In this document: positions 35,149 through 62,910 of the stretch, one piece after another
Layout: the number at the start of each line of letters is the position of its first letter
Numbering within the stretch: the first letter of the stretch is position 1
Assembly: GCA_028023455.1 (NCBI GenBank)
Contig: JAQFVV010000003.1
Span: 4,216,001 to 4,280,000 of the forward strand
Direction of reading: 5' to 3'
DNA from: Epiperipatus broadwayi
Taxonomy: Eukaryota > Animalia > Onychophora
Length of the DNA stretch: 64,000 bases
Notes under the pieces: generated by a model
The model's database searches: none
Told to the model about the DNA's origin: nothing
Seen by the model: only the letters and a program-made list of their open reading frames with translations
Made by a program: the position numbers and the translations under genes

Positions 35149-35983
35149 GTAAATCTTTGCTTAAACCTTCATTGTTTTGACTATGTTTGGTCTTTACTTT
35201 TTTTGGTTTTTATTAATTATGAATGAACAACAGAATTGAACACCTTATTTATTTGATATACACGTTTTTGGTAATTAATTGGATTTAAGTATACTTAGAG
35301 TGAATCTAAAAGGTGCTTGCAGTGTATATAGATTTCTGAATTCACTTACTGTGATTATCCAATTAGTATGTAAATGATTGTCTTTATCTTAGCTTAGAGA
35401 ATAAATCATTTGAGAGAAACTGCTGAAATCTCAATGGATTAATCTGGTGTTTGATGTCTCTGAATTGGGCTTCGTCTGAAATTTGTCTAGTTTTATAGAT
35501 TTTTTATTTTCACTGTTATTGAATTGGTATAAAATTATAATAATGCTTCAGTCATCTGACATTATTGTTCATTTCTTGCACTCAATTAAAAGTGGCACCA
35601 TATTATCATTGTAATGAATAATTTTTGAAAATTAAACAATGATGTTTGTGCCTTTATATGGATGCACAAGCCTTCAAAAAATTACTTTGTACATCTTCTT
35701 TCAAATACAATGTCTGCTGATAAATATTAATATTGCAGCCTGCATAAAAAGAATTAGAGATAAATGTTATTGAAATTATTTTGTCAGCCATAATTACTTA
35801 GTTAGCAAGACTGAAAAGTATTTGTATTCTTTGAGTGGCACGCATACGTACACACATATAGTATGTATCCTAAGCATGGCTTTTGATAAACTTTATAATA
35901 TCACTTATCATTGTCCTGAAATGTAAATTGACTAAAATTATGAATAATGCAGGAAATAAATTGTGTTCATTGCTCATCATATA

Positions 35984-37140
35984 CACCTGGGTCTCTTTTT
36001 ACGCGGACTTATTTAACAAGATTTTGAAGTTACGCGATTCATGTTTCACCGGAAGTCGAACTCCGATAATGCGTTCTTACTTTAAATAATAAATTTGGTG
36101 CACTTTTATTGAAAGTAATGGCACATTATTGGAATTCGATTTTCATCTTAGTAATTTCAATATTTTCAGTGCTTTATAATAGTAAGATTTTATGCAATAA
36201 TGAAATTAAAATTATGATTTCCACATTTTATGTATACACATTAAATTTTACAAGATTATAATGTAAATTTGTTCAAACATTGTGCATGTTAATTTTGCAT
36301 TTTAAATCCCATTCTGTTTTTGCTTTTTAAAAAAGAATGTAATCAATTAATTATTAATCATTTAGTGTCCGCAAGTTTATTTTTAAAAGGTGAGTAATAG
36401 CAGTGAAACGAAATTTGATTTTTAAACGGAATTGAAAATTAAAGACAAAAATAAAAGTTTAGATACAGAAGAAAATGTAGAAAAAGATAAAGAAGCAGAA
36501 GTGGAACCTGTTCCTTTCACTGCAAAAATGATTCGAGGTCTTCAACTTTCTAATCAGCTGGCAAATTATTTTCTTATAAATGACACTAATCACGAACGTG
36601 CTCTTAAATTCCAACGAGAGCTAAATGGTTGTATGACTGGATATCGCATTCATAAACAATTAATAAAATCATCATCTCAAAGATTAATTACGTTGTCACC
36701 AGAAAACAACACAACATGAGAGTGAAGTTGGTGCTAGTTGTATTTCCTCTTGTGAAGAATCAAAAACCAGTTTGCAAATGAACTTGTTTACCGGTAAATA
36801 GTGATAATAATTAAAACGTGTATAAAAAAATGTATGCATAAAAATACATAATGTTTTGAATAAAATTAAATATTATAGTTAAAAAATAGTTTAAAAAGTT
36901 TGTCTTGTATCAATTTTTTTCAAATTTGAAATTTTTTATTAGTCATATTTTATTTTCTTATTTTTTTTTTGCGCGAATTTTAAAGTAATTTTACGTTGGT
37001 GCTTTGCTTTTATGCGAATTTTGAAAAATCACAGACCGCATCCCCCCTTTTTCAATGTAAGTTACGTCTATTTTTGCGCGATTTCGTTTGCGTGTGTTTT
37101 CTGAGGAACTTATTTTATCGCGTAAAACGAGACCCAGCTG
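35984..37140 (+). mobile_element. Tigger/pogo-derived element retaining transposase C-terminus
   Basis: TIRs and TA duplication. ORF 36432-36719 ends NDTNHERALKFQRELNGCMTGYR..KQLIKSSSQRLIT, resembling the Tigger C-terminal D.N.ER..K..R.L...M..Y....K....Q..IT motif. Confidence 0.93.
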
Positions 37141-39246
37141 TATGCCATCTCTAAAAAGTGAACTCCAGATATTCGTAGAATGTTGTAAATAAAGTATCAC
37201 CATAGTAAAAAGAAAGAGAAAATAATAAACTGTATTTTGTAGGGAATAATACTGTTTTATTAAGCTGCAATATATAGTCAGTGCATGTGTAACTTTGATG
37301 CTAGATATTAAAAATTAGTTCTGAAAACAATCATTTTCATTGAAAGGCCAGAGCATTAATTTGTCAATATACAGAATATTATTTTAATCTATTAATTGCT
37401 TGCATATAACATTGAAAAATGTCTGATGGATGAAGTAACCAAAAAAAAAAGGGAGTAAAGAATGGACGTAATGAGCTGATATTTCATGAATGTAAAAAGT
37501 TAGTTATGTACTATATAAAAGTATATGAAAATGATGTATTTATAAAAAATAATGCATTAAGATATTACTAAGTATTGAAATTTATCTTAATGAAGCATAT
37601 CAAATATTTTATAAGACAAATAAATGAGCAATATCATTGCAATCTTAAGTTTACACAAAATATACTATTTAAAGGGATAATCTGATTTCAATTCAAAATA
37701 TTAATTAATAAAGGTCTATTAAACTGTTATTTTAAGAAGTGCCATCAAACTATTATTAAGTGCAATATAAAATTTAAGCCAACTTGGATTTTGGAAAGCT
37801 AGATAGACTCCAATGTGCTGGAACTGCATTTAACAGATTAAAAAGTGCAATATTTCATTATATTGATATAATTATCATAATTAAATTAGTAATACATAGG
37901 GATGTAGTTTGTTCATTTTATTATATGAAGTCAGATATGAACCCTTATCAATATAACACGCACAGATAAAAATCTCATTAGCTTGAGTGCTTTGTAAGAT
38001 TGTATAAATATGACTGCAAGATTATAAAACCAAGTATGGTGTTATGGAATCTACTATTATAAAGACACATCTTTATTGGATTGAAAATATATGCAAATGA
38101 ATGGTAACAGGACTTCATAATAAGTTATAATGAATTTGAGCATAACTTTCATTGGAGAAGTAACCCATTTATATTATAAAGATTATCTCAAAAAGATGTT
38201 CTAAGAAAATGCAATACTGATTTCTTTCTTCGGGGAGATGTTGCTGAGGATAAAATACAACTGCTATTGGTTATTGTGAACTTAAGAAGTTTGATAAAAA
38301 AATGAAAAACATTTGTACATGTCAGCAAACTGGAAACAGTATCTGATATATGTGGATGTATTTGTAAGATAATCATTACAAAATTAATTTTACTCTTTGT
38401 CTCTATTTTTTTCTCCCAAAGTTAGAATTCCCATACTCATATGTGAGGGACTGTTACTTAGATGTATTGGGATTGGACATTATTGTGAACCAAAGTAAAT
38501 GTATCTTCTCTAGGAAGTTTTAATGAAGTTAAGCTATTCTGTAGATAATTGAAGTTTAACAAACTTTTGAAAAATATTTTTCATGAATGGAAAACAAATT
38601 GATTGTTAGAATGAAAATAAGTGGAAACAAAGTATGTGAACAAGAAAGCAAAACATTGGTACTGAAAAAATAGGAATAAAAGGCAGCATGACACTTTGGA
38701 GATTGAAACAGGGATAAAAAAGAAAAAAAAAACATTTGCTGTAAATATTTATCAAAGTAGATGCGAAATTAATCACTATAGTAAATTGGAAGGTTGAATT
38801 ATTGAAATGTGAATGAATAATTTGCAATTGAGAAAATAAAAAAAAGGAATTAGAAATATTTATTAGAATGAATGTTTTGGAGGAGCAATGAAGAATATGA
38901 GGGAAAGGATCTGTTAAAAGCTACAACAAGGATAAGGAGGGAGGATGAAACAAAAATTTATGCAGCAGTTTTTGATGATTATTTTTTTATTATAATGAAG
39001 GAAAAATTTTATTTTTATTTTTAGATGAAATACATTTTATTATTATAATGTTGGTTTCTAATCATTTTGTATGCTATAAAACTTACTTTTTTCTTTATAT
39101 ATTTTGTAAGATAATATCATGCTGTCTTTTTAATTAAAACAGGCAAAACTCATTATACGTATTGCCACACTTAGCAAGCTAGGGTAATCAATGGATGCCA
39201 GAAGGCTTGTGCATAAAATCCCTATCTAGTGCCTACTCATCCAATA

Positions 39247-39289
39247 TCCCCAGACTAGTTTCTGGATTATGTCCTTCATCAGTGAGGAG
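39247..39289 (-). ncRNA. Minimal type I hammerhead ribozyme (left arm of palindrome)
   Basis: Minus strand CUCCUCA-CUGAUGA-A-GGA-CAUAA-UCC-A-GAAAC-UA-GUC|UGGGGA; same architecture as the right-arm copy. Confidence 0.8.
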
Positions 39290-39625
39290 TCTTGGATCTG
39301 AGAGCACGGCATCTTGATCTTAGGATCTAATGCAACCCTCCAGCAGCCATCTTTTATCTCCATATAACTACAAAACTATAAGTCTTAAACTCTTAAACTG
39401 AAAACACCTTAATGTTTTTAGTCCAAGCCCATTAGCTTATATAGCCATATGAGTCTGAACAGTTCAGACCCATATGGCTATATAAGCTAATGGGCTTGGA
39501 TTGAAAACATTAAGGTGTTTTCAGTTTTAAGACTCATAGTTTTGTAGTTAAATGGAGATAAAAGGTGGCTGCTGGAGGGTTGCATTAGATCCTAAGATCT
39601 AGGCACAGTGCTCTCAGATCCAAGG

Positions 39626-39668
39626 CTCCTCACTGACGAAGGCCACAAGCCAGAAACTAGTCTGGGGA
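39626..39668 (+). ncRNA. Minimal type I hammerhead ribozyme (right arm of palindrome)
   Basis: CUCCUCA-CUGACGA-A-GGC-CACAA-GCC-A-GAAAC-UA-GUC|UGGGGA. Stem I 6 bp, intact core, palindromic ACUAGU stem III, GUC cleavage triplet at 39660-39662; A.A apposition at the base of stem II. Confidence 0.8.
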
Positions 39669-40479
39669 TATTGGATGAGTAGGCACTAGATGGGGATTTT
39701 ATGCACAAGCCTTCTGGCATCTATTGATTACCCTAGCTTGCTGTGTGTGGCAATACGTACAGTGAGTTTGGCCTGTTTTAACAACAATTATGCACAAGCA
39801 TAAGAAGTGGTGGTCAGGTAATATTTATTGGCTTAAAATCTTTTTAGATTACAATGTGGATATTAATGCATTTGATCACACATAAGCAAAACTATGTCTA
39901 CACATTATGCCTTTCCTACGTCTTTGAAATTAATTAAATAAGATTAATTATTATAAGCAAAAAAAAATAAAAAATAGTCACATATCACATGCCTCCACTT
40001 TTTTTTTAAGCTTGCAGGAAATAAAGAGCAATGCTAATTGCTCAATAAGCTTTGAGGTAAAAGCTTAGCAAGAGAAAGTATTTAAATTTATCTCTATTTG
40101 AAAACCACCACCCCCGCCATCACCTGACCAATGGTTTCATGCTTTTGACACTCCTCAGAGAAGCGCTAGGGTAGCTTTAGATACTAGATCTAAAAACACC
40201 AACCCAAAGCCAGCATTTAACTAAAAGTTGACTATTGAGTAGAAAATCTGAAGTTTTCAGATACCTAAATGTCTTCAAACCCAGCTATCTAACTCAAATA
40301 GCTATAAGGGGCTGAGAGAGCTTCAGCCAAACCATATATAAGTCTCAGCAATATAACGTTGCTTAAGACTAAAACCAAAGATTATAAGTAGTCAATAAAA
40401 AAAAATAAAAAATAGAGTCATATATCACATGACTCCACTTTTTTAAGCTTGCAGGAAATAAACAAAGAGCCATATATAT

Positions 40480-41399
40480 TGTAACGGGATGGGGTGGGTG
40501 ATAAGTGGAACTAAATTTGAACTGGGTGATGGAAATAATCATCATCACACCCAAGTCAACAATATTTCAATAATTTACAGAGTATAATAAGTCAGATATT
40601 TAATAATAAAATGAGATTAGAGAATCTCTGAGAACATTGAGAGATCAGCCAGCTAACTCAGAAGAGCAACTAAAAAAACAATTATTTATCAACCAGCATT
40701 ATAAAATTAAAGTATGGGTAAATACTCAAGAGAAATAACCATCTATCATCATTATTGATGGGAATAAACAAATCAGGACAATAAATCAACAGTCCATCTT
40801 GTGGCTGGATTTGAACAATAAAAAATATAAATCAACAGTCAACCTTGTGACTGGATTGGAAATGGGTCTTCTGTAGACCAGGCTAACTATTGAGCCTTTG
40901 CCAGCTTGGGCAATTATATAAACATAACTTGGATGCACCAGCTTAGTGCCCATCTGTTAAAATACACAATAATCAGAAATCAAAACAATAATAATGGGAC
41001 ATTAAAACATGCTGATCATCATCAATGCTTAGACCATTTGTAGTGGCCAACTATAAACGTAAATTTTTAATAAGAACATTAATTTTTAATAAGACTAAAG
41101 TAAAATAAAAGATAATAGTGCATGGGCTTTAAAGAGTATAATCTTATGCGCCAACCAGGATGATTATTGATCATCACTGGATGCCTAAAGCACTAAGTAC
41201 ACATCCCCATTTATCCGTGCACCAATCTAGCTCAGAGAACATCAGCTCTATTACTATATGTGATCAAGAGATAACGGAAATAATTTTTAACAATTAAATA
41301 CAAGTTTATTAATAACAGTAAAAAAAATGATTAAGGTCTTATAAGGGTTCTAATTTTGAAAAGTATACAATAATAAACGTTATTACATTGTAATTTACA
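40480..41399. mobile_element. Solo-LTR-like young repeat (boundaries uncertain)
   Basis: Starts TGTAACGGG after ATAT; candidate end TTTACA|ATAT; internal ~46-bp tandem repeat; higher GC than flanks. Confidence 0.3.
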
Positions 41400-42840: not shown

Positions 42841-42913
42841 TAATTTATTAATAAGTAATTTTATGTGATGTATTTTTTTTTTTTAAAATCATTTCCTTTT
42901 TTTTTTTTGTTCT

Positions 42914-43511
42914 TATTTTCTTATTAATGACACTAATCATTAACATGCTCTTAAATTCCAATGAGAGTTAAATGGTTGTATGTCTGGATATCGCGAGCTT
43001 CATAAACAATTAATAAAATCATCGTCTCAAAGATTAATTACTAATTACGTTGTCACCAGAAAACCATTGATACAACATGAGTGTGAAGTTGGCGTTAGTT
43101 GTATTTCCTCTTGTGAAAAATTTGATTTTTTACCAGTTTATAAATGAACGTGTTTTTCGGCAAATAGCAATAATAATTAAAACGTGTATAAAAAAATGTA
43201 AATTACTGTACTGTAAATTATGCATAAAAATATATTACTTTAAATAAAATTAAATATTATAGTTTAAAAAAGTTTGTCTTGTATCAATTTTTTTCAAATT
43301 TGAAATTTTTTATTAGTCATATTTTATTTCCTTATTTTTTTTTGCGCGAATTTTGAAGTAATTTTACGTTGGTGCTTTGCTTTTATGCGAATTTTGAAAA
43401 ATCACAGACCGCACCCCCCCTTTTCAATGTAAGTTAAGTCTATTTTTGCGCGATTTCGTTTGCGCGTGTTTTCTGAGGAACCTATCTATCGCGTAAAACG
43501 AGACCCAGGTG
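42914..43511 (+). mobile_element. Truncated Tigger-derived element (right part only)
   Basis: Aligns to ~7693-8170; ends CGAGACCCAGGTG|TA; left TIR absent. Confidence 0.88.
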
Positions 43512-43715
43512 TATATCACATATATACACTAAGTTTATGAATTTTATATAAATTATTAATAAGAGAAAAAGGTAAAGAAATAATGGTAATTACATAAATG
43601 CAATGTATCACATATAAATTGCTTAAGTCTTAAATAAGTATAATTGAGATGTAATTGTTTCCATTAGTTTCATTTATTCATAATTAAACTTATATTTGAA
43701 AATTAGATTTTATAT

Positions 43716-46568
43716 CGTCATTAATCATTATCAATCCTCTGCAGGATGAACGTCTCTCCAAGTTCAATCCATCTTTTCCTATCTTTAGCTTCTCTTCTCC
43801 GCATCACCCCTGCACACTTTCTTATTTCATCCATCCATCTAACATGTGGTCTCTTTCTGGGTCTTTTACAATCTCTTGGAATCCAGTTTAAAATTTCAAG
43901 TCCATCTATTATCATCTCTTCTAGCAATATGTTTAGCCCGACTCCACTTCAGTCTTAATTTTTTCAATGAGGTCAATAACACCTGTTTGTTCTCTTACCC
44001 ATACATTGCGTTTTCGATCTCTTCTTGTTACTCCCAACATGCATCTCTCCATACTTCTTTGAGTGGTCTGAAGTCTCTGTATTGCTCTTCTATTAAGTGT
44101 CCAAGTCTCAGATCCATAAGTAAGAATTGGCAAAACACATTTATTAAAAACCTTCCTTTTCAAACACATAGGCATATTTCCTTTTAGTATCAAGTTATTT
44201 CTACCAAAAGCACTCCAACCAAGTTTAATTCTATGATTAATTTCATCCATTATGTTTCCATCTGTATTAATAATCTGACCAAGGTATTTGTAACTGTTAA
44301 CTTCTTCTAACTCATCATAATCAATCTTTATTTTCATATTTTGAGAAAATCTATTAATCATTACTTTAGTCTTTTTAACATTTATCTTTAGTCCTACTTT
44401 CATCTGATAACTCCTGCAACATTTCCTGTAACTCTAAAGCATTATTTGCAAAAACAACTACATCATCTGCAAAATCTAAATGACTTAAATAATCTCCATT
44501 TACTTTCACTCCTTTAGCTTCCCATTTTAATCCACAAAATACTTCTTGCAGCACTGCTGTAAAAAGTTTTGGAGATATGGAGTCACCCTGTCTTACACCC
44601 TTTTCAATGTTGATTTTCCTACTATCATTATGTAATCTAATTGTTGCTGTTGCATTTTTATAAATATTCTTTAAAATATGACAATATCCTGGATCTACAC
44701 CTTGATGATCCAATGCTTTAATCACTGAAGAAATGTTTATAGAATCAAATGCCTTTTCATAATCTACAAATCCTAAGCATAATGGCAATTCATATTCATT
44801 TGTCCTTTCTATAACTTCTCTCAATACCTGGATATGATCTACTGTATGTACTAAACCCACTTTTAAATCCAGCTTGTTCTCTTGGTTGGTGGAAATCCAG
44901 TGTTTTTTGTAGAAGAGTTGTAATTATCTTAGTAAAAATTTTGTATAAAACTGATAAAAGGCTGATAGGTCTGTAATTTCTAATATCTTCTTTATCACCT
45001 TTTTTAAATATTAATATTAATACTACATTCTTTCAATCATCTGGTACATCTTTATCATTAAGACATTTGGTATATAACTTTGCTAAAAAATATTCTATTT
45101 CTTCACCTGCTTCTTTTAATATATCAATTATAATTCCTTCATTACCTGGAGCCTTTCCTTTCTTCATACATTTAATGGCATGTCTCACTTCTTCATTTAA
45201 AATTCTAGGCAATTCGGAAGATATAATAGGTATAGGAGGCACTTGTTCTTTACTATTATATAATTCTTGATAAAAGTCTTCTACACATTTCATGATGTCA
45301 TCTCTCTTTTTAGTAATAATGCCATCTTTTTTTCTTATTGCAGATATAAACTTCCTACCAATACCAAAATGTTGTTTTACACTCTGTAGACTTTTATTTT
45401 CTTCTACAGCTTTCCTTGCTAGTTCACAATTATAATTTCTTATATCATTTTCAACTCTTTTCTGCATCATTTTACAAAATTCGAGATATTCAATCTTTTT
45501 TAATGCATCATTGTTGTATATCCTCATATTCCTTCTTTTCTTCATAAATTCTCTAGTCTCAGTAGAAATTTTATTGGTCAATTGCTGCTTTTTTCTACCA
45601 GCTATCTTTGTTGCAGTTTTTAAAAGGGTATCAGTTATTTTCCTATTAATGTCATTCAAATCTGAATCATGTTCAAAATCTACTAATACTTGAAACCGAT
45701 TTGGAAGTTCTAATTTAAATTCATTAGAATGTTTCTGAAGATTAGGAATATCAATTGCAAATCTTGCTTTTCTTAATAATTTTTGTCTCTCTAGTTTTGC
45801 ATTAACATGTATCTTACATCTTACTAATCAATGATCACTTCCTGTATTAAATTTATTAAGAACATTACAATCTTGAAATGTGTATTTTCTGTTAGTTAAA
45901 ATATAATCCAATTCTGCTGTACCTTCTTTTGGATGCTTCCATGTCCATTTCTTTTAACATTTTTCTCAAAAAAAGAATTCATAATATAAAGTTTTTATTT
46001 TTCTGCAAACTCCACAAGTTTATGTCCTCTCTCATTTCTATTACCATAACCAAAATTACCTATAGCATTTTCATCTTTCATTTGTTTACCAATTCTAGCA
46101 TTAAAGTCTCCCATAACAATTTTAAAATGTTGTTTACTCTGATCAAAAGCCTTTTGTACATCCATATAAAAATCTTCTATAACGTCATCACTATGAGAAC
46201 TTGTTGGGGCATAAACCTGAATTATCTGCATTTGGTATCTGCTATTAAGTTGTAAAACTAATCTTGCCACTCTGTCTAATACACCATCAATTTCCACAAT
46301 GTTATTCTTCCATTTTTTATTTATAATGAATCCTACTCCACTTGTATTTTCAATATTTGTGCCTTTATAGTAGAGTGTATGTCCATGTTTTAAATCAATT
46401 GTTTCTTCACCTTTTCTTCTAACTTCACAAAGTCCAATAATGTCCCATTTAATATAAGATAGTTCTTCTTCTAACTCTTGCAATCTTCCTTCACTTGAAA
46501 GTGATCTGCAGTTGTAAGTACCTAAATAAAAAGTCGTCATCAAATGGAAGCCTGAGTCTGCAATCAGG
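43716..46568 (-). mobile_element. RTE-clade LINE, near-complete ORF (APE endonuclease + RT) broken by a few stops/frameshifts
   Basis: LGTYNCRSL, WDIIGLCEVRR, IQVYAPTS, IVMGDFNARIG (APE); FVDYEKAFDS, GVRQGDSISPKLF, HLDFADDVV, YKYLG, LPILTYGSETW (RT); GAT/AAT-type tail near 43716. Inserted in an LTR. Confidence 0.97.
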
Positions 46569-47121
46569 TTGTTTGATCAGTGTTTAATAGTGTACATATT
46601 TTCATTTATATGGGAGAATACATTCCTATCAGTTTTATGAGTTAGAGATCGATCTCAGAATGAGTCATCCCTGTATAAATTGTTGTATCAAATTAGGTAG
46701 GGCCTAAGGCTGCTTCTTATAATTATTGTATTGACAAATTTATTCAGTTAGGGTTTGAACCAAAAGGCCACCCTTTTATACTTTTTATATAAGCAGTTGC
46801 ATTTAGGAATAGGATCTAAAAAAGACAATTTCTTATGATTATTGTAGTAAAGATTGCATTGTCTACTCATATAGGACATGTATGTATAAATAGTAGGTAG
46901 ACATGCAAGTTAAAGAAATATATATTTATGAATTCATACATGCATAGAATTATATTTAATTTTAGTGAAGTTAGGGTTAAAGATACGGCAAATGTTACAC
47001 TATCTATGAATGGTTTGACAGTATGATGTATAAAGATTAAAGGACTTTGTTAAAGAAATAAATTGCATATTTATTAATGATTATATTTTGTAAATAAAAT
47101 ATTGTTACATGATTTGTTAAT

Positions 47122-47337
47122 AAACAAAGGCAAAACTCCCCGTACAGTAGTGTCACCCTGTGCCAAACAGAGTAATCAATGGATGCCAGAAGGCTTGTGC
47201 ATAAAATCCCTATCTAGTGCCTACTCATCCAATATCCCCAGACTAGTTTCTGGCTTGTGGCCATCATCAGTGAGAGTTTTGCCTTTGTTTACAACAAATT
47301 ATGTGCTAGTATAGAAATGGTGATCATGTGATGTTTG
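47122..47337 (-). mobile_element. 216-bp non-coding HHR-bearing mini-element, internally deleted relative of the 39134-39781 palindrome
   Basis: 47130-47276 aligns to the palindrome left arm and 47274-47337 to its right end and tail. Flanked by a 13-bp direct repeat ATGATTTGTTAAT (47109-47121, 47338-47350). Absent from the sister LTR at ~50630-50660. Confidence 0.85.
47235..47276 (-). ncRNA. Minimal type I hammerhead ribozyme, fully paired stem II
   Basis: Minus strand CUCUCA-CUGAUGA-UGGC-CACAA-GCCA-GAAAC-UA-GUC|UGGGGA. Stem I 5 bp (two G.U), stem II 4 bp, palindromic ACUAGU stem III. Confidence 0.85.
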
Positions 47338-49875
47338 ATGATTTGTTAATGTTATTAAGGAAAATAAATTGTATATCAATTAATAAGTACACTTGTAAAT
47401 AAATTATTATCATATGATTTGTTACTTTGTTTATGTAAGATTGCATGGTCTACCATCATTCATAAGGTCTCTGCGATTTAGTGTGTCATTATAAATGGAA
47501 CTGTGTAATGGTAAATATTGTTTTAGATATATATATATATGTTAGTTAATTTCTTGATGCTTAAAGCCAGGTGGCACCCGTGTAATTTATGTAAATGATT
47601 TAATAGCGTAAATGTAAATTTTTGCTTGCCCAAGATATGGGCATGAATTTATCTGTTATAAACTCGCATTTGTTTGAATTAAATGAATGATATGATTGAC
47701 CAGACAATATTATTATTTTTCTCTATATTGTAATTATATTGTAAAACAAAAAAAAAAAAAAAGAAGGCAGCAAATTGTGCCATGAAGAACACATACAAGT
47801 ATATGTGGTATTCTGGAGTGTTCCAGAGGACCATCTAGTGCTGTTGGTGATGTATCTAGTTACAATTGTATAACACATAATAAGTTTATTGTTTATAATA
47901 TTTTGAATATTGTTAAAATGGAGAATGAAAATGAAAAGGATGAAGAGCAGCAGGAAATATTGGAAGCAAATACTTCTGAAACTTGTTGTGAAGAAGATGA
48001 CGTTGAAATTTCAGATGTGGACAATGCCCATCCAAATAGTTATTCATGTAATCAAATAAATTATAAAGGCATTAATAAAGAAATAAAAATACATGAAATA
48101 CTGCAATGTCATTACAATTAGATGTGAAGCAGATGTTTAGCATAATATTAAAACAGATGAAAAATAATCAAAAAGATAAAAATATATAGAGCAAATAAAT
48201 CAACACTATGGAAAATAATCAAAAGCTAATGGAGTGTAATCAAAAGCAAATAAAAACCAAACTATAGAAAGTAATCGAAAAGATAAAAGCACATGAAGCA
48301 ATAAACTAAACTAAAAGATAATCATAAACATATGGAACTTAACCAAAAACAGATGGAATCCTGGTTTGAAGATAATCGGCAAAAGATGGAATTGAAGAGA
48401 CAAAAATGGATGGATAATTTTTGCAAACCATTTAAACTATAGCGAAAACTAGATGATGAGCAAAAAAGATGAGCAAGTATGAATTCAAGAAGAAACAGTA
48501 GATCAAATTATGGGTCACGAACAAGCTCAATTGTTTTTAAAATCAGAAAATGAACCAAAAATATGTGATGAACTTTTAAAAATAAATCTGAATTAAAACT
48601 GTTAGAGGAAAATATACAAAATAAATATAAAACACATTCAAATGAAAGAACAAATAACAGAAGGTGAACCTGTTGAACTAACCCAAGTAGATAATAATAA
48701 ACTACAACTGCTGAAAGAAATTCAAAGCAACAGGAAGTGTTAAAACTAAATATCCAAATACATGAGAATAAGCTTGAAGACTCGCAACAAAAGTTTGATG
48801 GATCAAAAGAATGTTATGTTCTATATCAAGTACCAATCCTAATCTCACAACTGGATAAACAAATACAAGTTAAAATAGAACAAAGTTTACTTTATCCCAA
48901 AATGAAATGGATTCACTGTTTACACTAAAAACTAAATGAAGACTTGACTCTTATGCTGATTAATCTATTATCTAAAGAAATACTACAGCATCAAGTAAAC
49001 ATTGCATTATGTGTTACATGGATATATTGTATTTCTATAGAGTTATGCACAACAAGAATTTTACTGATTGTCAACATTACTTACAACTGGGAAGAAATAA
49101 AATAAATTTCACCCACACAATTGCATCTCCACAGATGCCACAAAAGAAAAATCCCCAGATACTTTATTATCAAACTACACTTGAACAGTTTTATGTTAGT
49201 GAAGAATGGCTGAATAACCAGATTATAAAATGTAAAATGGACATAAGTACAATAATTTTTGTTGTTTTTAAGTTTGAGTATTTGAAATGAGCAATCCATT
49301 ATTCATTTCAATATAAAATAAATAATTTTTTTTTTCTTTTCTAAGCAAAATGATATGTGCAAATTTGGTTTTAAAAGAAAAAAAGAACCAAAACAAGATT
49401 CAAGAAAGAAATTAACTTTTGGATATAAAAATCAGTTTTTCTTTTCTATTGAACAGATTGGAATACTATTTTAAATAAATTCCAGGATTATTTCACTATG
49501 CCTTGTGAATAATAAACTAAGGACACTACTAACACTTAGTTAGATCTAATCTGGAACACTTTAAATGATATTTTGAATAATTCCTGCTGAAAGGAAGAAG
49601 TAAGCTTATTTAGAAGATAGCTAGAAATTACAAGATTATTATCACCTTAATTTAAACAGACTTCTAATATTTGTCAGAAAGACGTAAATGACAACTATTT
49701 GTTTTGGATGAGTTTTATTTAAAGAATGATTTGTACTTTATTTTAAATAATTTGGATTTGTAAATAATGCTTATTATCCAGATATTATTTTAAATAAAAT
49801 GTTAGTTTTAAAAAAAGAAAGAAATGAATTTGTAATAACTTTTGTATTTGTTGAAATTATTTAAAAAAAAAAATT

Positions 49876-50937
49876 ATATATCATATATGTTCAATAAGTT
49901 TATGAATTTTATATAATTTATTAATAAAGAGAAAAAGGTAAAGAAATAATGAGTCATATAAATGCAATGCACACGTATAAATTGCCTATGTCTTAAATAT
50001 AACCGTAGTTAACATGTAATTATTTCCATTAATCTCATTCGTTTGTAGTCAAACTTATATTTGAAAATTGGGTTTTGTATAGATAGATTTATATATGCAC
50101 AGTTGTTTATTCAGGGTTTCATAGTTTATATATGTTCACATCCATATGGAAGAATACATTCCTATTGGTTTAATGAGTTAGGGATCGATCTCATAGTGAG
50201 TCATCCCTGTGTAAATTGTAGTTGTATTAATTTAGGTTTAGAATCAAAAGGCCACTCCTTATAATTATTGTATAGAAGGTTTATTCAGTTAGGGTTAGGA
50301 TCAAAAGACCATCCTTACATAGTTATTATTATATAAGCAGATACATTTAGGAATAGGATCTAAAAAAAGAGACTATTCCTTATAATTATTGTAATAGATA
50401 GTGTGTCTATTCCATATAGAGCATATGCATGTGTAAGTACTAGGACACATGTAAATCAAAGAAATTTTATATTTATGGATTCATACATGCATAGAATTAC
50501 ATTTAAGTTTATTGAAGACAGGGTTCAAGATACATCGAATGTTATATTATCTATGAATATATTAATGATATATAAAGATTAAAGGATTTTGCTAAAAAAA
50601 TAAATTGATTGTACTTTGTGAATAAATTATTGTTATATAATTTGTTAATTTTAAAATTGTACATCAATCTAATAAGTACAATTGTAAATAAATTACCATT
50701 GTATGATTTGTTACTTTGTTTATGTAAGATTGGTTCATCTACCATCATTTATTGGGAGTAACTTATGTTCTCTGTGATTTAGTCCGGCATTACAATTGGG
50801 ATTGTATAATGGTTATTTTATTATATTGTATAAAATATTCTTTTAGATATACATGTGTTAATTTATTTCCTGATGCTTAAAGCTAGGTGGCACCTGTGTA
50901 ATTTATGTAAATAAATAGAAAATGTAAAATTGTAACA
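49876..50937 (+). repeat. Right (3') LTR, uninterrupted
   Basis: Direct repeat of the interrupted left LTR; ends 64 nt upstream of the FAM120A exon at 51002. Confidence 0.75.
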
Positions 50938-55500: not shown

Positions 55501-56345
55501 ATGTTTTTCTATACATGTATTTGTTATGTCATAATGTATCGATTAACCAGTTGTCTTTAAGCATTAAAATCAGTAAATATTCCCTGACTTCATTTTTACA
55601 CTAATTATGCAATAACAGAAGAAATTTGAAATGAAAGCAAGGAATAAAGTGAAAGATACATAAGTTAAAATTATTTCTGAATTATAGCATTAAAGGAGAG
55701 TGAAGATACAACTTTTTTTAAAAATAAAATAATAGTTTAAGATAAAAAAAGGAAAACAACTGTACATATGGGGAAATATTTTGTCTTGACTGTAATTAGT
55801 CAATGATATAGCCCCCTTTCCCCCAAAACAAAACAAAAAATCTTCAAAAAGTGATGGATCCATTAAAAAAAAATTTTTTTTCTATGGTATTAATTTCTGG
55901 ACCAAAGAAAGAAAAATGATCCATCCATATAAAGTGGGTCAAGAATTCATAGCATATATAATTATGAAATAGTGCTTTAATAATAATAAAGTTGATAATA
56001 ATTTTACAATAATTTTTTTCAAATCTTCTGTTTGCATATTGATTTTGATAATATTTTAAGTTTGACAAAATAGAATATAAATTCCTTACTGTTTCCATAA
56101 TGTGTATGTACATTAAATTTTTTGCAAGACATTGAATGGGAAGTAATTAGGTAATAGGATATTCTGATCACTGCTTTGGTGATAATTTGCCATTCTTTGT
56201 CATCTTCTGATCATGATATTATAAATAGAAGTATTATTCTTATATCTTCTCTTTTATTTTTTTTGCATTTCTTCATATATATATTACTTATATCCAATGT
56301 CCACATATACATTTTAATGCAAATTTTTTTATATAATTCCTTTAA

Positions 56346-56390
56346 TTTCCTAACAGTTTCGACTGTCCTGCAGTCTTCATCAGAGCTACT
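56346..56390 (-). ncRNA. PLE-type hammerhead motif (stem I weak)
   Basis: CUGAUGA-A-GACUG-CAGGA-CAGUC-GAAAC-U-GUU|AG: perfect 5-bp stem II, only 2 bp of stem I. Confidence 0.55.
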
Positions 56391-56854
56391 TCATTTAAAC
56401 ATATAATCATATAACAATATACATATAAAAATACATATTTTACATTATTATTCATAATACATATTTTATTCTTTACTCTATAAACTTTACCCCCTCTTCT
56501 AATAATTATTTTTTCATTATTTCTTTACTGTTTCTACTTTCTTTTTATTTTTTCTTCCTATCATTCTCCGTTACTCTGTAATATATTTATCATCTTTTTA
56601 TTTTACTTTTAACACCTATAAATCTAATTCCTTGCCTTCTTTTCTAATCTTTATCTATACTTATTTTTTTTATTAATAATCTTTATTTCTATTCCCATCT
56701 TTACTCCCTTTTATAATTCACTTATTCATTTTACTCATCACTTCACAACCTTTCTCTTCCTTTTAAATTTATAACTGATTTTTTTCAAAATCCTTTCATA
56801 CAATTCCCTCTATTATCAGTTTCTTTAACTATTCTATGTTACAAAACTCTCTAT

Positions 56855-56878
56855 ACACACACACACACACACACACAC
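56855..56878. repeat. (AC)n microsatellite
   Basis: About 12 uninterrupted AC units. Confidence 0.95.
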
Positions 56879-57475
56879 ATTTTCTCTATCATTATTAATA
56901 TTCCTATAAAAATAATGTGCCCCCCCCCCATCTCTATTCAAATTTGGTTTTACCTTCTTAATTAATATAGCTTCTTTTATTTTTCTATCTCTTCTTTTAC
57001 TAGTATATTTGTGTAGATTGAATTTTTCATTTCACCTACTTATTTAGTTCTTTTCTTATTATTCCTACATGATCTACATTCTATCTCATATACCCCATAT
57101 ATATATATTTAACGAAATCATATGAGAAGGGAAAATGCAGAATAGAAACATCAGTGAATAAGAAAATGAATGGGGATAGTAGTATAATGAATTGGAATTC
57201 TAATGTGAATAATAAATATAAGATAAATAGTATTAGTTCAAGAGTATATAGATCTGTTAATTATTATTCAGATAATGAAGACTATAAGAAAGAGGTAGAT
57301 TTAATAATTAAAGAGTTTAAGGAGAATGAATATTCAGAGAAAATAATAGAAAAAAGTGTAAAAATATCAGAAAAAAGATATAAAGGAGAAAATGAAGAAG
57401 AAGAGAAGGGAAAATGTAAGAAAGATAGCATAAAAAAGGATGAATATATAGGTGTTAAAATGTATAGTAATAATA

Positions 57476-58547
57476 CACCTGGGTCTCTTTACGCGGACTT
57501 ATTTAACACGATTTTGAAGTTATGCGATTCAAGTTTCACCGGGAGTCAAACTTCGATAATGCGCTATTACTTTAAATAATAAATTTCGCGCACTTACGTT
57601 ACATTGAAAGTAATAGCACATTATTGGAATTCGACTTTCATCTTAGTAATTTCAATATTTTCACTGCTTTATAATAGTAAGATTTTATGCAATAATGAAA
57701 TTAAAATCATGATTTCCACATTTTATGTATACACACATTAAATTTTACAAGATTATAATGTAAATTTGTTCAAACATTGTGCGTGTTAATTTTGCATTTT
57801 AAATCATATTCTGTTTTTGCTTTTTAAAAAAGAATGTGATCAATTATGAATCATTTAGTGTCCGCAAGTTTATTTTTAAAAGGTGAGTAATAGCAGCGGG
57901 CATAAAATCTGATTTTTAATTGTAATTAACAATTTAAAAATTACTTACGGCGACTTGAAATTAATGTGATGTAAAACGAAATTTGATTTTTAAACGGAAT
58001 TGAAAAAAGAATTTAATTTTTAGTTGTTAGTTTTAATTAAATTTTTCCCAGCAGTGGTGAATAAATGTCTTTTTATTATCATAAGTCTAAGTTCATAAAC
58101 AATTAATAAAATCATCATCTCAAAGATTAATTACTAATTACGTTGTCAACAGAAAACCATTAACACAACGTGAGAGTGAACGTGTTATTCACCAAATAGC
58201 GATAATAATTAAAACATGTATAAAAAAATGTAAATTACTGTACTGTAAATTATGCATAAAAATATATTATTTTGAATAAAAGTAAAAATTATAGTTAAAA
58301 AAAGTTTGTCTTGTATCAATTTTTTTCAAATTTGAAATTTTTTATTAGTCATATTTTATTTCCTTATTTTTTTTTTTTGCGCGAATTTTAAAGTGATTTT
58401 ATGTTGGTGCTTTGCTTTTACGCGAATTTTGAAAAATCACAGACCGCATCCCCCCATTTTCAATGTAAGTTACGTCTATTTTTGCGCGATTTCGTTTGCA
58501 CGTGTTTTCTGAGGAACCTATTTATCGCGTAAAACGAGACCCAGGTG
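57476..58547 (+). mobile_element. Tigger-derived element inserted in the Penelope ORF
   Basis: Both TIRs and TA duplication (57474-57475, 58548-58549). Confidence 0.95.
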
Positions 58548-59538
58548 TATTGTCAAGAGCATTAATAAAATTATTAGAAAAAGTAATAAAAAATATAATA
58601 ATGTAATTAAGTATGAGATAGTACATAAAAAAAGGAGAAATGTAATGGATACATTAGATAATAAGTATATTAAAGAAATAGAAAAACATATAAATGGGAT
58701 ATATGAGATAGAATGTAGATCATGTAGGAATAATAATAAGGTAAGAACTAAATATGTAAGTGAAACGGAAAATTCAATCTACACAAGATTAATTCAGCAT
58801 AGGTATGATAAAACATCCCCAGTTTATATGCATGCTATGGAAACAGGACATGTGTTTGAGAAAGATAGCATAAGAATGATTGGGCATATTAGTAAAAGAA
58901 GAGAGAGAAAAATAAAAAGCTATATTAATTAAGAAGATAAAAGCAAATTTGAATAGAGATTGGGGGTGGGTGAGGTGAAGACATTATTTTTAAAGTAATA
59001 TTAATTATGATAAAGAAAATGTATATAGAGAGAGTTTTGTAAAATGAAGTTTAAATATAGGATAAATAGTTAAAGAAATTGATAATAGAGGGAGTTGTAT
59101 GAAAGGAGTACATGAAAAAGAGTAAGGATTTTTGGGGAAAAAAAAAAATTAAATTTAAAAGGAAGAAGAAGGTTGTGCAAGTGGAGAGTAAAATGAATAA
59201 ATGAATTATAAAAAGAATAAAGATAGGAATAGGAATAAAGATTATTAATAAAAGAATAAGTATAGATAAAGATTAGAAAGGAAGGAAAGGAATTAGATTT
59301 ATAGGTGTTAAAAGTAAAGTAAAAAGATGATAAATATATTAGAGAGTAATGGAGAATGATAGATAGGAAGAAAAAGTAAAAAAAAAAAAGAAACAGTAAA
59401 GAAATAATGAAAAAATAATTATTAGAAAAGAAGAGGGAATAAAGTAGAGTTAAGAATAAAATATGATTATGAATAATAATGTAAAATATATATTTTTATA
59501 TGTATATTAATGGTTATATGATTATTTGTTTAAATGTT

Positions 59539-59580
59539 GTAACTCTGATGAAGATTGCAGGACAGTTGAAACTGTTAGGA
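59539..59580 (+). ncRNA. Decayed PLE-type hammerhead motif
   Basis: CUGAUGA-A-GAUUG-CAGGA-CAGUU-GAAAC-U-GUU|AG. Paralogue of 56346-56390 with C>U changes leaving G.U wobbles in stem II. Confidence 0.45.
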
Positions 59581-62129
59581 AATTAAAAGAATTATATAAA
59601 AAAATTGACATTAAAGTTATATGTGGAGATTGATTATAAGTAATATATATATCTTAACTAGCATATTTATATTTTGCAATATAATAATATAAAATTAGTT
59701 TTTGATGAATAAAGTTCGCTTTGCAGATTAATTTTTTTTGTATAATCATTTTCTTAAAAATAAATCAATTTTATCACCCATTGAAACATAATTGTGTATT
59801 GTGATTTATGTTTCTGTATTTTTACCCTTCAGCTTTTATTAGTTTATGTCTATCAAGATTGGCCATGAATTGGCTATCTAATAAAATCTTAAGCACAGAA
59901 AAAACTTAAGCCATATGAAAAGTTTTTCAAATTCAGTTGAACTCAGATCATGAATGTTGCAAATTAACACTAGGAGTCTATTATTAATTTGTCATATTGT
60001 GTGTGTGTCAGTAACTATTGCTTCAGGAATAGGATCCCTATTATTTGTAATTTCCTCCGTAATTTGTGAACAAGATTTTTTTGAAAAGTAGTATTTAGAT
60101 TTTAAAATAACTAATTCTGGATAATGTAATGTAATAAAAAACATTTTTTGTATTTTGTAATTGATTTTTTTATTTTATTTTCACATTTTAAAAGAGCCAA
60201 TATTATAAACTAAGTTAGTCATTTAGTTAGTGCAAAATTGCTGATTTGGTTGATTAAATTAATGTCTTCCATTATTGCTTCATATATTTGTAAATGTAAT
60301 TGTCACTTTTAAAAACTATTTGACACAAAGAAGTTACAAGTTATATTATTAAAAAGCACATAAAAGTATATGATGTATATTATTTAAAATTGAGTATTGG
60401 AAAATAATATGCAGAATTTGGTTAATGTAAGAGAAACATTTGTAATAGCTATATTAAAATGTTGTAAGGTCATCATTTGCATCAGTATGAGGAATTTTAA
60501 TCTACGTGAATTATTTATTAATTATCTACTGGATAGTATTTTCATTTTGTCTGAAAGATATCAATTACAATATCAACTTTTCATTAATGATTTATAGAGT
60601 TAATATTTAAATCAGATTATTGAGGAGGGCATAGGAGATATTTGTGTTCATGGATTCGTCAAACTAATATTCATCTGTGGACTATGTGAATTTGAGTATT
60701 GTTATTATGGAAAATAACTTATGTTATGTAAAAATTTTTGAACCATGAGATAAATTTAGTCAGACAAAATATTGTAGTAATGATTGAACCAAGAGAATAT
60801 TATAATATAACTGTCTTAATCATGATTATTCTACCCAATATTTCCCAGGAATAGAGGACTGCCTATGTCTAGTTGATAGGAATACTTAAAAGATATAATT
60901 GGGACGTGTATAAGCAAGTTTTTCAATAACTGATATTAGAAATCATTGGCTTTGAATAACAACTACACTATCATAAATGTTCTTCTAGATAATGAAACTC
61001 AGTGCATTATCACTGGAATTTTCAAAAGTCTGTTGATCTATGCAATGATTTTTTCACTATGGTTTTGTGAAGTTTTTTTGGCAACATTTTTTTTTGTAAT
61101 ATCTGTCTGCTTTTTGTCATAAGTCTAGAACTTTAATCTTTACTTAAAGTAATCATTACAATTTGAAACTATCAATCTTGAAATGTTAAACAATTGAGCT
61201 CTCTTGGAAACTGAAGCTTCAGTTAATTGGTTACCATCAATTTCATTAATGTACGGTTTGTAAGGCAGAAAAAAATGTTACTTTGATATGAGCTAAAATC
61301 ATGAAGTCAAAATTGTAATTTTAATATAACAATTATTTTTCTTACTTTAACATTTGCATGTGCACATGTACAACCAGACACACATGAGGAAAGATAGATA
61401 AAATAGCATTAAATAGCCCATTATAGTACAAAACCTTTCAATATGTTCCACAGGGGAACAGTCAGAGAGATTATTAATAGATAATGACTGAAAGGTGAAT
61501 TTTTTTTTTTAGTTTTTTCTATTTTTTAATATTCCAGCTCTTGCAAATTTTCAATTACTTATAAGATTGTGGTAGTGGTAGATGAATGTGATCCTTCATA
61601 TATATATATACAGCACAATACAGTTTTGTTAAATATATATATATTCTAAGTAAGGTGTGTGTAATACATAAGACTATGGAATTAATAAATCTGTAGGCAG
61701 ATCTATAGAATTAGAGAATCAAATGAAATTTTGGCTTCTAACAGTTTTGAAAAATGTTGTATACTGAATTATGTTATGAATTAGTTTTGCTTGTCATATA
61801 TTGATTGATTTTAAATGAAATCAATATTTGATATTTTTTGTTTGAAAGTATACTCAATACTCAACTCAAAGCTATATTTAAAAATTTATAATGAAATTAA
61901 TTTGTACAGTGATGACTAGAGATGTAAAATTTTTCAAATATGTTATTGAAGACTAGTTCAAATATTTGTCAAATCATAATTTGTATATATGTCTTGGTGT
62001 TAAATGCCAAGAGTATCCATATAGTGGAACTTATCTTTTTGTATGAAGTAGAATAGCATTGATATTAAAAAAATCTTATGGAATACATGTGCATGTAAAA
62101 TGTAAAGTAATAAAAGATATGTAAAGTCA

Positions 62130-62910
62130 TAAAATATACATACCAGGAATGACAGAAAATTAAAGAAAATCTGCAGTCAATGCCATACCACACTTCAAGG
62201 AATGCTTACTTTTACTAAGTCTAAACTGGAAATGCTGAAGAACAAAAACTGCATCTATGAAATACCATGTGAATGTGGAAGTAAATACATTGGCGAGACC
62301 TGTCACCCTGTTGAACAGCAATTGAAAGAGCATAAACTAATGGTTAAAAGAGAGAAAAAACAGATATGTCTACCATAGCAGATCATGTATGTACTAATGA
62401 CCATATGTTTAATTGGGAAAATATAAAGATATTGAATAAAGAGGAAAAAATGCATAGAAAAAATTCAAGGAAGCTGCTCATATTATAATGGTAAATAATC
62501 GTATAAGTCAGCCCAGTATGGCAATATACAATATATGGAAGCCTCTAATTAATCTTGCTCTTAGGAAAAAATAAAAAAAAAATTAATTAGTCAAAAACAA
62601 AAAAAAAAATTTGAAGGACTCAGGAGGATTTGAACCAACTCTCATATATAAATATATCAAATTTTTACTATATGTTGCCTTTGACAGAATAGTTCAGTTG
62701 GTAGAGTGTTTGCCTTAAATTCAATATTCAAGAATAGGCCAGCAACACCTGAAGAAGAGTGGAGAATAATACTACTCGAAACATTGTAATTACTAATGTG
62801 TATTGTCCATTTGTGTGTTATTTCAAACAAGTTGTTTGTATTTGGAAAGTTTAAAATTTTCTATACATTCAACATTCATTCATAAATGATAGAAATAGTC
62901 CAACATATCA
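62130..62910 (+). mobile_element. Penelope-like element 3' fragment: linker + GIY-YIG + pLTR
   Basis: With frameshifts reads YIPGMTE.LKKICSQ...KNCIYEIPCECGSKYIGETCHPVEQQLKEHK...DMSTIADHVCTNDHMFNWENIKILNKEE..KFKEAAHII...IWKPLI; stop near 62575. Right boundary approximate. Confidence 0.88.
62743..62790 (+). ncRNA. Hammerhead-like motif in PLE pLTR
   Basis: CUGAAGA-A-GAGUGG..CUACUC-GAAAC-AUU-GUA: core and 6-bp stem II present, stem I not evident. Confidence 0.45.

Follow-up and report, generated by a model that had tools for sequence, protein, structure and literature searches.

The palindrome at 39134-39781 of the window (the whole 64,000-nucleotide stretch of DNA that was analysed) is very probably, together with its one-sided tail, a single retrotransposition product of a very high-copy, non-coding hammerhead retroelement of ~320 nt, mobilised in trans by the machinery of a Penelope-like element (PLE). 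The head-to-head form is insertion architecture, a by-product of integration and not the unit of the family, and the locus does not reveal a new class of element. Only two of its features are less ordinary: the exact symmetry of the junction and the probable origin of the two arms from two different source RNAs.

Structure of the palindrome

The two element copies lie in inverted orientation and are separated by a single nucleotide, 39461, where their 5' ends meet. The inverted-repeat search paired 39134-39389 with 39526-39781 at 92% and 39395-39460 with 39462-39527 at 95%. The left arm (39134-39460, minus strand) is tailless and has its 3' end leftward; the right arm (39462-39781, plus strand) has its 3' end rightward. 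Global alignment of the arms over 320 columns gave 23 substitutions (16 transitions, 7 transversions) and a single indel, of 7 nt at 39388-39394. Direct reading of the sequence placed a TATA-like motif, TATATAAG, at 39479-39486 (+) in the right arm and its mirror at 39437-39444 in the left, that is, 18-25 nt from each arm's 5' end, where it reads TATATA on both strands. No direct repeat of the ~320-nt unit was found at the locus. The longest ORF within 39134-39838 has 45 aa, and the ORF encoding the reverse transcriptase (RT) and GIY-YIG nuclease of an autonomous PLE is absent from the same interval.

The initial annotation had described a ~650-bp palindrome with a 1-nt spacer, no ORF, a sequence motif in each arm and an asymmetric right tail of ~45 nt, and all of these were recovered. 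It had also proposed that transcripts of the locus would form a rod. The full palindrome does fold back on itself, with a minimum free energy of -544.5 kcal/mol, but this is a trivial outcome of the inverted duplication. The right arm folded alone is nevertheless strongly self-paired (z = -5.2), with a 5' hairpin at 39470-39555 and a long hairpin at 39559-39730, the tip of which is the hammerhead motif. A minimal type I hammerhead ribozyme had been claimed for each arm as well; here the motif and its palindromic helix III were confirmed, whereas the Rfam hammerhead models gave no match, either at the gathering score over the whole window or at E<=10 over 39000-39950.

The hammerhead motif

An outward-pointing CUGANGA...GAAACUAGUC is present in each arm. 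The pattern CTGANGA-N(4-30)-GAAACTAGTC matched at 39253-39282 (-), 39633-39662 (+) and 47241-47270 (-), with 0 matches expected in shuffled sequence; since the three are copies of one repeat, they are not independent hits. The pattern scan and the fold together delimit the left-arm motif at 39239-39297 (-), with a helix I of 6+6 bp, the core CUGAUGA, helix II GGA/UCC, GAAA and helix III ACUAGU, and the right-arm motif at 39618-39676 (+), with the core CUGACGA (position 7 is free), helix II GGC/GCC, GAAA and ACUAGU. The core CUGANGA / GAAA / U-H cleavage triplet, in type I order, is carried by all three copies, and it follows from the motif that cleavage is predicted after C39662 (+) and C39253 (-). 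Helix I pairs UCCUCA with UGGGGA and AUCCAA with UUGGAU. Helix II has only 3 bp. Where a G10.1-C11.1 pair would be expected to adjoin the core, the helix is bordered by A and A (by U and A in the second copy), which puts its G-C pair one step away from both core strands. Pairing in this helix is kept in all the variants GGC/GCC, GGA/UCC and AGC/GCU, the last of these occurring in loose-end consensus sequences.

When two copies were folded together, an intermolecular ACUAGU helix was formed (-32.2 versus 2 x -14.3 kcal/mol). As modelled, the hammerhead is a feature of the family, apparently built for action as a dimer through the palindromic helix III. In a fold-back transcript of the palindrome locus the ribozyme would lie in a ~320-bp duplex, with no second sense copy available for helix III, so its action there is not expected. 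The only Rfam models that matched the palindrome were generic miRNA-hairpin models, driven by the palindrome itself. Silence of the hammerhead models is expected for minimal helix III variants, though the result is still negative. The exact ribozyme-core pattern had no match in metagenome, viral and prokaryotic genome contigs, and a literature search with the helix III string returned unrelated primers only.

Ends of the insertion and a second copy

The right arm is extended at its 3' end by a 47-nt tail (39782-39828, +), which is identical at 37 of 47 positions (79%) to the tail (47292-47337) of a second insertion and is absent from the left end of the palindrome. Depth of family contigs persists through the 39802-39842 bin and then falls to about 119. 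At the left boundary, in DNA run X1, it climbs from about 266 to >10^6 at about 39134, and the RNA-run contigs show heterogeneous loose ends before 39133. Just outside the insertion, TCTTTTTAA at 39125-39133 matches TCTTTTTAG at 39839-39847 at 8 of 9 positions, and the pair is probably a target-site duplication; support for this is only moderate because the DNA is AT-rich. The 10 nt between the recognisable tail and the right candidate copy (TGGCTTAAAA, 39829-39838) could be either a longer tail or filler. Two details fit a PLE-type insertion less well: the duplication matches at 8/9 only and begins 10 nt past the recognisable tail, and a 47-nt tail is slightly above the published 30-40 bp.

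An assembly artefact is unlikely, as 7% of sites differ between the arms and the outer boundary on either side is spanned by single-copy contigs from the DNA run (38900-39156 on the left, 39796-40014 on the right); these contigs cover the outer edges only, and no single contig is shown crossing the palindrome centre. The possibility that the flanks of the palindrome are a third copy of the LTR which hosts the second insertion was rejected, the resemblance amounting to low-complexity similarity and one shared 12-mer.

The second insertion (47122-47337) is also head-to-head, with unequal arms. Its long arm (47122-47274, -) is a 5'-truncated copy of 153 nt, broken within hammerhead helix I and identical to 39629-39781 at 133 of 153 positions; its short inverted arm (47275-47337, +) consists of the element's last 17 nt followed by the 46-nt tail. 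The host of this insertion is an LTR whose sister LTR has the empty site, which ends at 50649. Alignment of the occupied with the empty LTR defines a 13-bp target-site duplication, ATGATTTGTTAAT, at 47109-47121 and 47338-47350.

Abundance of the family

The arm belongs to a non-coding family that is repeated on a huge scale. It was matched by 196,603 contigs. Across 39134-39842 the summed contig depth (DNA run) was 10^6-3.7x10^7, compared with about 36 for the single-copy contigs of the flanks; this depth is not a copy number. Depth peaks over the hammerhead-bearing core and is lower toward the palindrome centre, which is the 5' part of the element. The family is also contained in RNA-labelled runs, possibly through DNA carry-over. 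This depth was rejected as evidence of transcription, as the family-to-flank ratio is no higher than in the DNA run and carry-over could explain it, and the contig data contained no RNA ends for the element.

Contig joints between left-arm and right-arm sequence number about a thousand (15 listed and 978 unlisted). Among the 15 listed, which have short sides of 20-29 nt in the DNA run, 14 skip 234-439 nt in passing from left arm to right arm, all at different positions and unequally. Together with the arms of 153 and 17 nt in the second insertion and the fall of depth in the 5' direction, the many joint positions indicate variable 5' truncation with a constant 3' end. A unique palindrome, with every other copy being the pLTR of a coding Penelope, is contradicted by these data: the family shows the palindromic arrangement repeatedly, and its copies are by far too many, and too short, for all of them to be such pLTRs.

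Mode of insertion

Inverted copies are well documented for PLEs. Their signature is an inverted 5'-truncated copy, with a tail of 30-40 bp confined to one end (PMC8557442). Also described are duplications of 8-10 bp, an inverted pLTR bearing a tail of 31 bp, copies arranged head to head more often than in any other way, and non-PLE sequence mobilised in trans (PMC3846280). A PLE protein, once purified, cuts both strands and extends them, and its reverse transcription starts from two neighbouring internal sites, which mark the limits of the tail (PMC11167929). The palindrome was probably produced in the same way. A PLE reverse transcriptase with its GIY-YIG nuclease, supplied in trans, would make a staggered cut, and both DNA strands would be extended by target-primed reverse transcription, as occurs in vitro for an Anolis PLE. 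One synthesis would begin at the tail-distal site of the RNA and the other at the tail-proximal site. Both cDNAs would then have run to the RNA 5' end and been joined, giving the exactly symmetric junction.

A non-coding element mobilised by a PLE had been claimed initially, and the inverted copy, the one-sided tail and the target duplication speak for it; no PLE ORF was found in the window. A Pfam search of 14 ORF segments of the window detected no PLE and only a LINE (APE + RVT_1) at 43933-46543, which holds the sole RT; ten of the segments had no Pfam match at all. With neither a PLE reverse transcriptase nor a GIY-YIG ORF found within the 64 kb, we infer the PLE partner from the architecture. 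ARAGORN found no tRNA-like head in 38500-40500, and a scan of the window DNA for bacterial-type promoters and terminators was uninformative.

The differences between the arms could be explained either by two source RNAs or by decay of an initially perfect palindrome. In the latter case the same PLE-type insertion would have started from a single RNA, the cDNA snapping back at the template 5' end and priming itself; the arms would have been identical at birth, and all 23 differences and the indel would have arisen after insertion. Such self-priming was inferred by Arkhipova et al. 2013 from palindromes at inverted PLE junctions (PMC3846280). An exactly symmetric junction with a 1-nt spacer is also expected from a single template, about 8 of the differences are private to one arm and resemble later decay, and transitions lead transversions 16:7. 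We nevertheless regard this course of events as rather unlikely. A snap-back copy should mirror the 3' end, yet only one arm has the tail. For at least 7 of the 23 differences, each of the two letters is common among members of the family, in runs from several organisms. Moreover, of the four differences within the ribozyme, two form a compensatory pair in helix II, one lies in loop II and one at the free position 7, a pattern unlikely to result from random decay (by rough estimate, of the order of 10^-4). By these comparisons the two arms probably came from two different source RNAs.

A distinct, unrecognised viroid-like family had been proposed because of the head-to-head layout with both polarities. 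The palindrome itself would then be the unit of an ambisense, rod-like RNA, with one ribozyme for each polarity. Recurrence of head-to-head copies in the genome would suit such a unit, as would the self-pairing of a single arm, which resembles that of retrozyme RNAs. The positions of the junctions do not, being variable and mostly asymmetric both in the second copy and in the listed joints, from which it follows that the palindrome is a by-product. The palindrome centre is much less abundant than the core, and the second copy retains just 17 nt of one arm. The two "polarities" are the same sequence twice, and the transcripts of the two strands would be about 93% the same sequence. In any fold-back transcript the ribozyme would be buried in the duplex and lack the second sense copy needed for helix III, and no RNA ends or circles were seen among the assembled contigs. 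This reading is very unlikely. An event at the DNA level is extremely unlikely: the long inverted repeats and short flanking duplication could recall a foldback or MITE-type transposon with long TIRs, or hairpin-capped repair of a break in a single earlier insertion, but the arms have homologues in unidirectional copies truncated at the 5' end, the two ends are not symmetric, just one of them bearing a tail, this tail recurs in an independent insertion with an empty-site control, and junctions varying across the family are unexpected for TIR transposons.

Within the reading as a PLE-type insertion, it is conceivable, if doubtful, that full-length head-to-head dimers are the self-sufficient source loci of the family, each arm gaining an upstream promoter from the other. 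An initiator-like TCAGACC (39464-39470) stands at the very beginning of the right arm, with the TATA-like motif of the left arm (39438-39444) ~28 nt upstream; the arrangement is mirrored on the other strand. If this were so, the symmetric dimer would supply a promoter that a solitary copy lacks, and outward transcripts would be of near unit length.

The locus offers a clean, well-delimited example of short non-coding hammerhead ("retrozyme-like") elements integrating with the full Penelope signature. It lends support to the recent proposal that the retrozymes of animals derive from PLEs and are non-autonomous, and it extends that proposal to head-to-head arrangements. The symmetric junction, combined with arms of probably different ancestry, bears on the origin of inverted PLE copies, which could lie in self-priming or in priming on both target strands; if the arms did come from two RNAs, the genome would show directly that PLE enzymes can prime on both strands and from two templates.

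Comparison with known systems

The endonuclease-positive PLEs (Penelope/Poseidon, Neptune, Nematis, Naiad) resemble the palindrome in that an inverted copy lies head to head, its 3' end and that of its partner facing outward, that one end alone may be extended, and that the target duplications are short and variable (PMC8557442, PMC3846280, PMC11167929). They also share a hammerhead motif in the terminal module and a TATA-like motif that can be read both ways. The palindrome differs from them in that its repeats neither enclose nor adjoin an RT/GIY-YIG ORF and a direct pLTR is lacking; two copies of a ~320-nt non-coding unit make up the entire insert, the tail is of 47 nt instead of 30-40, and the arms abut exactly, 5' end to 5' end.

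In minimal PLE hammerheads, which act as dimers, helix III is palindromic and an extra nucleotide precedes helix II on its 5' side (PMC4209133). The metazoan type I motifs of this kind (Cervera & de la Pena 2014, PMC4209133) agree with ours in the core CUGANGA...GAAA...UC, the 6-bp helix I, the extra nucleotide between A9 and helix II, a helix III of 1-2 bp whose palindromic insert (ACUAGU) points to action as dimers, and compensatory variation within the families of one genome. In contrast to them, helix II here has 3 bp (published, 6-8 bp), an extra A stands between helix II and G12, and helix I runs into an imperfect hairpin of ~55 bp.

Metazoan non-LTR retrozymes (Cervera & de la Pena 2020, PMC7229834; Li et al. 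2026 preprint, 10.64898/2026.07.22.740005) are likewise non-autonomous, AT-rich and highly self-paired elements of 170-400 nt with a type I hammerhead, a proposed PLE mobiliser and very high copy numbers. Their defining feature is head-to-tail tandem copies, the transcripts of which self-cleave and circularise, and neither of these two papers mentions inverted arrangements. The palindrome locus has no direct tandem; both the 5' and the 3' end of its element are fixed, and the ribozyme lies about 200 nt within it.

The likeness to viroid- and HDV-like circular RNAs, namely that the fold is rod-like and that a hammerhead can be read from each of the DNA strands, is superficial. Those are RNA replicons whose plus and minus strands differ in sequence, each with a ribozyme of its own, whereas the two motifs found here are inverted copies of one DNA element. 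The palindrome is chromosomal DNA with a probable target duplication, in which one element is present twice, on the two strands.

Structure of the palindrome

The palindrome with a 1-nt spacer described in the initial annotation was real over 39134-39781, both in an inverted-repeat search and in a global alignment. The repeat search gave two collinear blocks, 39134-39389/39526-39781 (92%) and 39395-39460/39462-39527 (95%, arms 1 nt apart). When the left arm was aligned globally with the reverse-complemented right arm, the 320 columns contained 23 substitutions, 16 transitions and 7 transversions, plus one 7-nt indel. The TATATAAG motif and its mirror were both read in the arms, the longest ORF over the element was only 45 aa, and the arm alignment and tail comparison confirmed a right-end extension (the tail) without a left-hand counterpart. 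The proposed rod was recovered in that the whole stretch folded as RNA into one hairpin of -544.5 kcal/mol, but this is the mere outcome of an inverted duplication, which folds so trivially. A probable target duplication was found as TCTTTTTAA at 39125-39133 and TCTTTTTAG at 39839-39847, the right copy lying 10 nt past the recognisable tail. Single-copy contigs of a DNA run, 39796-40014 and 38900-39156, spanned both outer boundaries at a depth of ~36-38.

Hammerhead motif

The pattern CTGANGA-N(4-30)-GAAACTAGTC matched three times in the 64-kb window, at 39253-39282 (-) in the left arm, 39633-39662 (+) in the right arm and 47241-47270 (-) in a second copy of the element, versus 0 in 100 shuffles; since these are copies of one repeat, the count shows the repeat and not three independent ribozymes. 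Infernal with the Rfam hammerhead models did not corroborate the motif, as no window match reached the gathering score, and at E<=10 over 39000-39950 generic miRNA-hairpin models were returned and no hammerhead model. Read by hand, each arm has a helix I UCCUCA/UGGGGA lengthened by AUCCAA/UUGGAU, followed by the core CUGANGA, an extra A, a helix II of 3 bp with a 5-nt loop, A, GAAA, the self-complementary ACUAGU and the predicted cleavage C, with A15.1-U16.1 framing the palindromic insert. The sole deviation of the right-arm core, CUGACGA, is at the free position 7. Helix II is GGC/GCC in one arm and GGA/UCC in the other, a compensatory pair, and a third version with pairing kept, AGC/GCU, was seen in loose-end consensus sequences of the family contigs. 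When two left-arm motifs were cofolded, an intermolecular ACUAGU helix was predicted at -32.2 kcal/mol, versus 2 x -14.3.

Other hammerhead-like motifs occur in the window. One, CTGAGGA...GAAACCATTGGTC at 40134-40158 (-), lies ~110 nt right of the palindrome in a unit of ~440 nt (39959-40462), where DNA-run depth was also raised; this unit has 66-nt direct-repeat ends (39959-40025, 40399-40462) and is another ribozyme family in a partial head-to-tail tandem. A third motif, CTGATGAAGA[C/T]TGCAGGACAGT[C/T]GAAAC, was present at 56356-56383 (-) and 59545-59572 (+), in each copy of a 730-nt inverted-repeat pair (56275-57006 / 58886-59652; 83%, ~1.9 kb apart), and the ORF segments between these copies had no Pfam match. 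A further motif lies at 62749-62782.

Abundance of the family and fold of the single arm

Contigs from a DNA run and from three RNA-labelled runs were mapped to 38900-40100 at a likeness of >=85%. The mapped contigs numbered 196,603, and in the DNA run the summed depth within the element was 10^6 to 3.7x10^7; such sums do not measure copy number, so the claim is limited to extreme abundance of the family. Depth climbed at ~39134 and dropped back to ~119 only past the 39802-39842 bin, and the right extension is therefore part of the repeat. The maximum was in the ribozyme-bearing core (39187-39268, 39556-39719), with depth toward the palindrome centre ~9- to 150-fold lower, depending on the bins compared. 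Loose ends of the family contigs were consistent before 39533, before 39559 and near 39168-39184; they reveal subfamilies that have the core in common and differ in their 5' and 3' sequence. The family was also at high depth in the RNA-labelled runs, one of which included a contig of the locus (39759-39934). This depth was rejected as a sign of transcription, the family-to-flank ratio being no higher than in the DNA run. RNA ends, which contigs by their nature do not reveal, were not detected. Exact patterns of the ribozyme core retrieved no further copies from public metagenome, viral and prokaryotic contigs.

One arm alone folded significantly better than its shuffles (z = -5.2), with a predicted 5' hairpin at 39470-39555 and a long imperfect hairpin at 39559-39730 carrying the hammerhead at its tip. 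No tRNA-like head was found at the locus.

The palindrome as an insertion architecture

The second copy (47122-47337) is head-to-head yet asymmetric: its minus-strand arm of 153 nt is cut short inside helix I, and its plus strand has just the element's final 17 nt and a 46-nt tail, 79% identical to that of the palindrome. It is inserted in one LTR of a pair, flanked by a 13-bp duplication, ATGATTTGTTAAT, and the sister LTR is empty at the matching point. Contig joints (15 listed and 978 more) linked left arm to right arm in 14 of the 15 listed, skipping 234-439 nt and implying arm pairs of, e.g., 72/176, 97/140, 124/290 and 211/134 nt; with joint sides of 20-29 nt in the DNA run each is weak alone, and the argument lies in their number and consistent type. 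Because the second copy is asymmetric, its sister LTR is empty with a duplication at the insertion, and the joints vary, the palindrome is an insertion architecture and not the unit of the family. The viroid-like, 'ambisense' family proposed initially was thus not borne out, while the non-coding, hammerhead-bearing, PLE-type insertion stood, PLE being a Penelope-like element with reverse transcriptase and GIY-YIG nuclease. The locus is a further member of this already known type.

Several of the best-supported joints fell at 39250-39261 and 39639-39657, in or beside the core of the ribozyme and its palindromic ACTAGT; in this small selected sample of listed joints they may reflect microhomology or a template-switch hotspot. 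The direct repeats read as LTRs lie at 46568-47621, hosting the 216-bp hammerhead mini-element, and 50102-50931 (~75-77% identical, flanking ~2.5 kb). The 12-mer TATATTTTGTAA has only three occurrences in the window, against 0.26 expected. Two of them (39098-39109 and 47082-47093), in the same orientation, are 24-28 nt away from the two hammerhead-element insertions, beyond the 3' end that lacks the tail. It is native to the LTR hosting the second copy, with a diverged version in the empty sister, and its position near both insertions may indicate an endonuclease target preference. With 25.7% G+C, the window has a very high AT content, and it contains dense interspersed repeats common to many positions, e.g. 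7345-8179, 35981-37143, 42910-43515 and 57471-58556.

Origin of the two arms

The probable mechanism is target-primed reverse transcription on both strands by a PLE enzyme supplied in trans. Observed directly were the head-to-head layout, the fact that it recurs with junctions at differing positions, the tail at one end only and the control given by the empty site; exact symmetry requires either two full-length cDNAs or the snap-back of one cDNA copying itself. Snap-back would make both arms from one molecule, and the tail on one arm only speaks against it. So do the family letter frequencies, which cover ~15 of the 23 arm differences: ~8 are confined to a single arm, with the letter of the other arm at 89-99% in the family, and at least 7 affect positions at which each of the two letters is frequent (19-50%), a pattern shared by the runs of several organisms, although these frequencies are biased by contig-to-arm assignment and do not show linkage among variants. 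The four differences inside the ribozyme (the two compensatory changes, one in the loop and one at the free position 7) are likewise improbable as random decay, of the order of 10^-4 by a rough estimate. We therefore consider snap-back unlikely, and two templates are favoured as the probable source of the arms, given the one-sided tail, the shared family variants and the pattern of ribozyme differences.

If two independent cDNAs did end at the same nucleotide, 39461/39462 would be the 5' end of the RNA, and the ribozyme would be internal to the mobilised RNA, ~200 nt in, and would not define its ends. What remains novel is the symmetric, probably two-template junction, together with the speculative idea that head-to-head dimers provide a promoter for each arm.

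Comparison with Penelope-like elements and retrozymes

No PLE ORF was found in the window. Its reverse transcriptase, at 43933-46543, belongs to a LINE with an AP endonuclease, and 10 other ORF segments had no Pfam match. This LINE (-) is decayed, with RVT_1 and broken frames, and a second partial copy lies inverted at 12490-13777 (+; 88% identity).

The locus carries the documented signature of endonuclease-bearing PLEs. In Adineta vaga, head-to-head is the commonest PLE arrangement, with a 31-bp tail on one inverted terminal repeat (pLTR), 8-10-bp duplications, palindromes at the inverted junction and a TATA box reading both ways, and pLTRs by themselves are enough for trans-mobilisation (PMC3846280). 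Purified PLE protein of Anolis cuts both strands of the target and extends them, and reverse transcription begins at two adjacent internal RNA sites delimiting the tail (PMC11167929). Studies of retrozymes, non-coding hammerhead-bearing retroelements, propose PLEs as their mobilisers and describe monomers and tandem copies only (PMC7229834, 10.64898/2026.07.22.740005); the word 'inverted' is absent from the 2020 paper (PMC7229834) and occurs in the 2026 preprint (10.64898/2026.07.22.740005) in a reference title only. The strong predicted fold of the single arm resembles retrozyme RNAs, which are 'highly self-paired' (PMC7229834). Metazoan PLE hammerheads carry one additional nucleotide between position 9 and helix II and a tiny palindromic helix III, with dimeric action and low in vitro activity (PMC4209133). 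The putatively catalytic motif of each arm matches this published pattern (PMC4209133), but differs from published PLE hammerheads in its very short helix II and in the A that separates helix II from G12.
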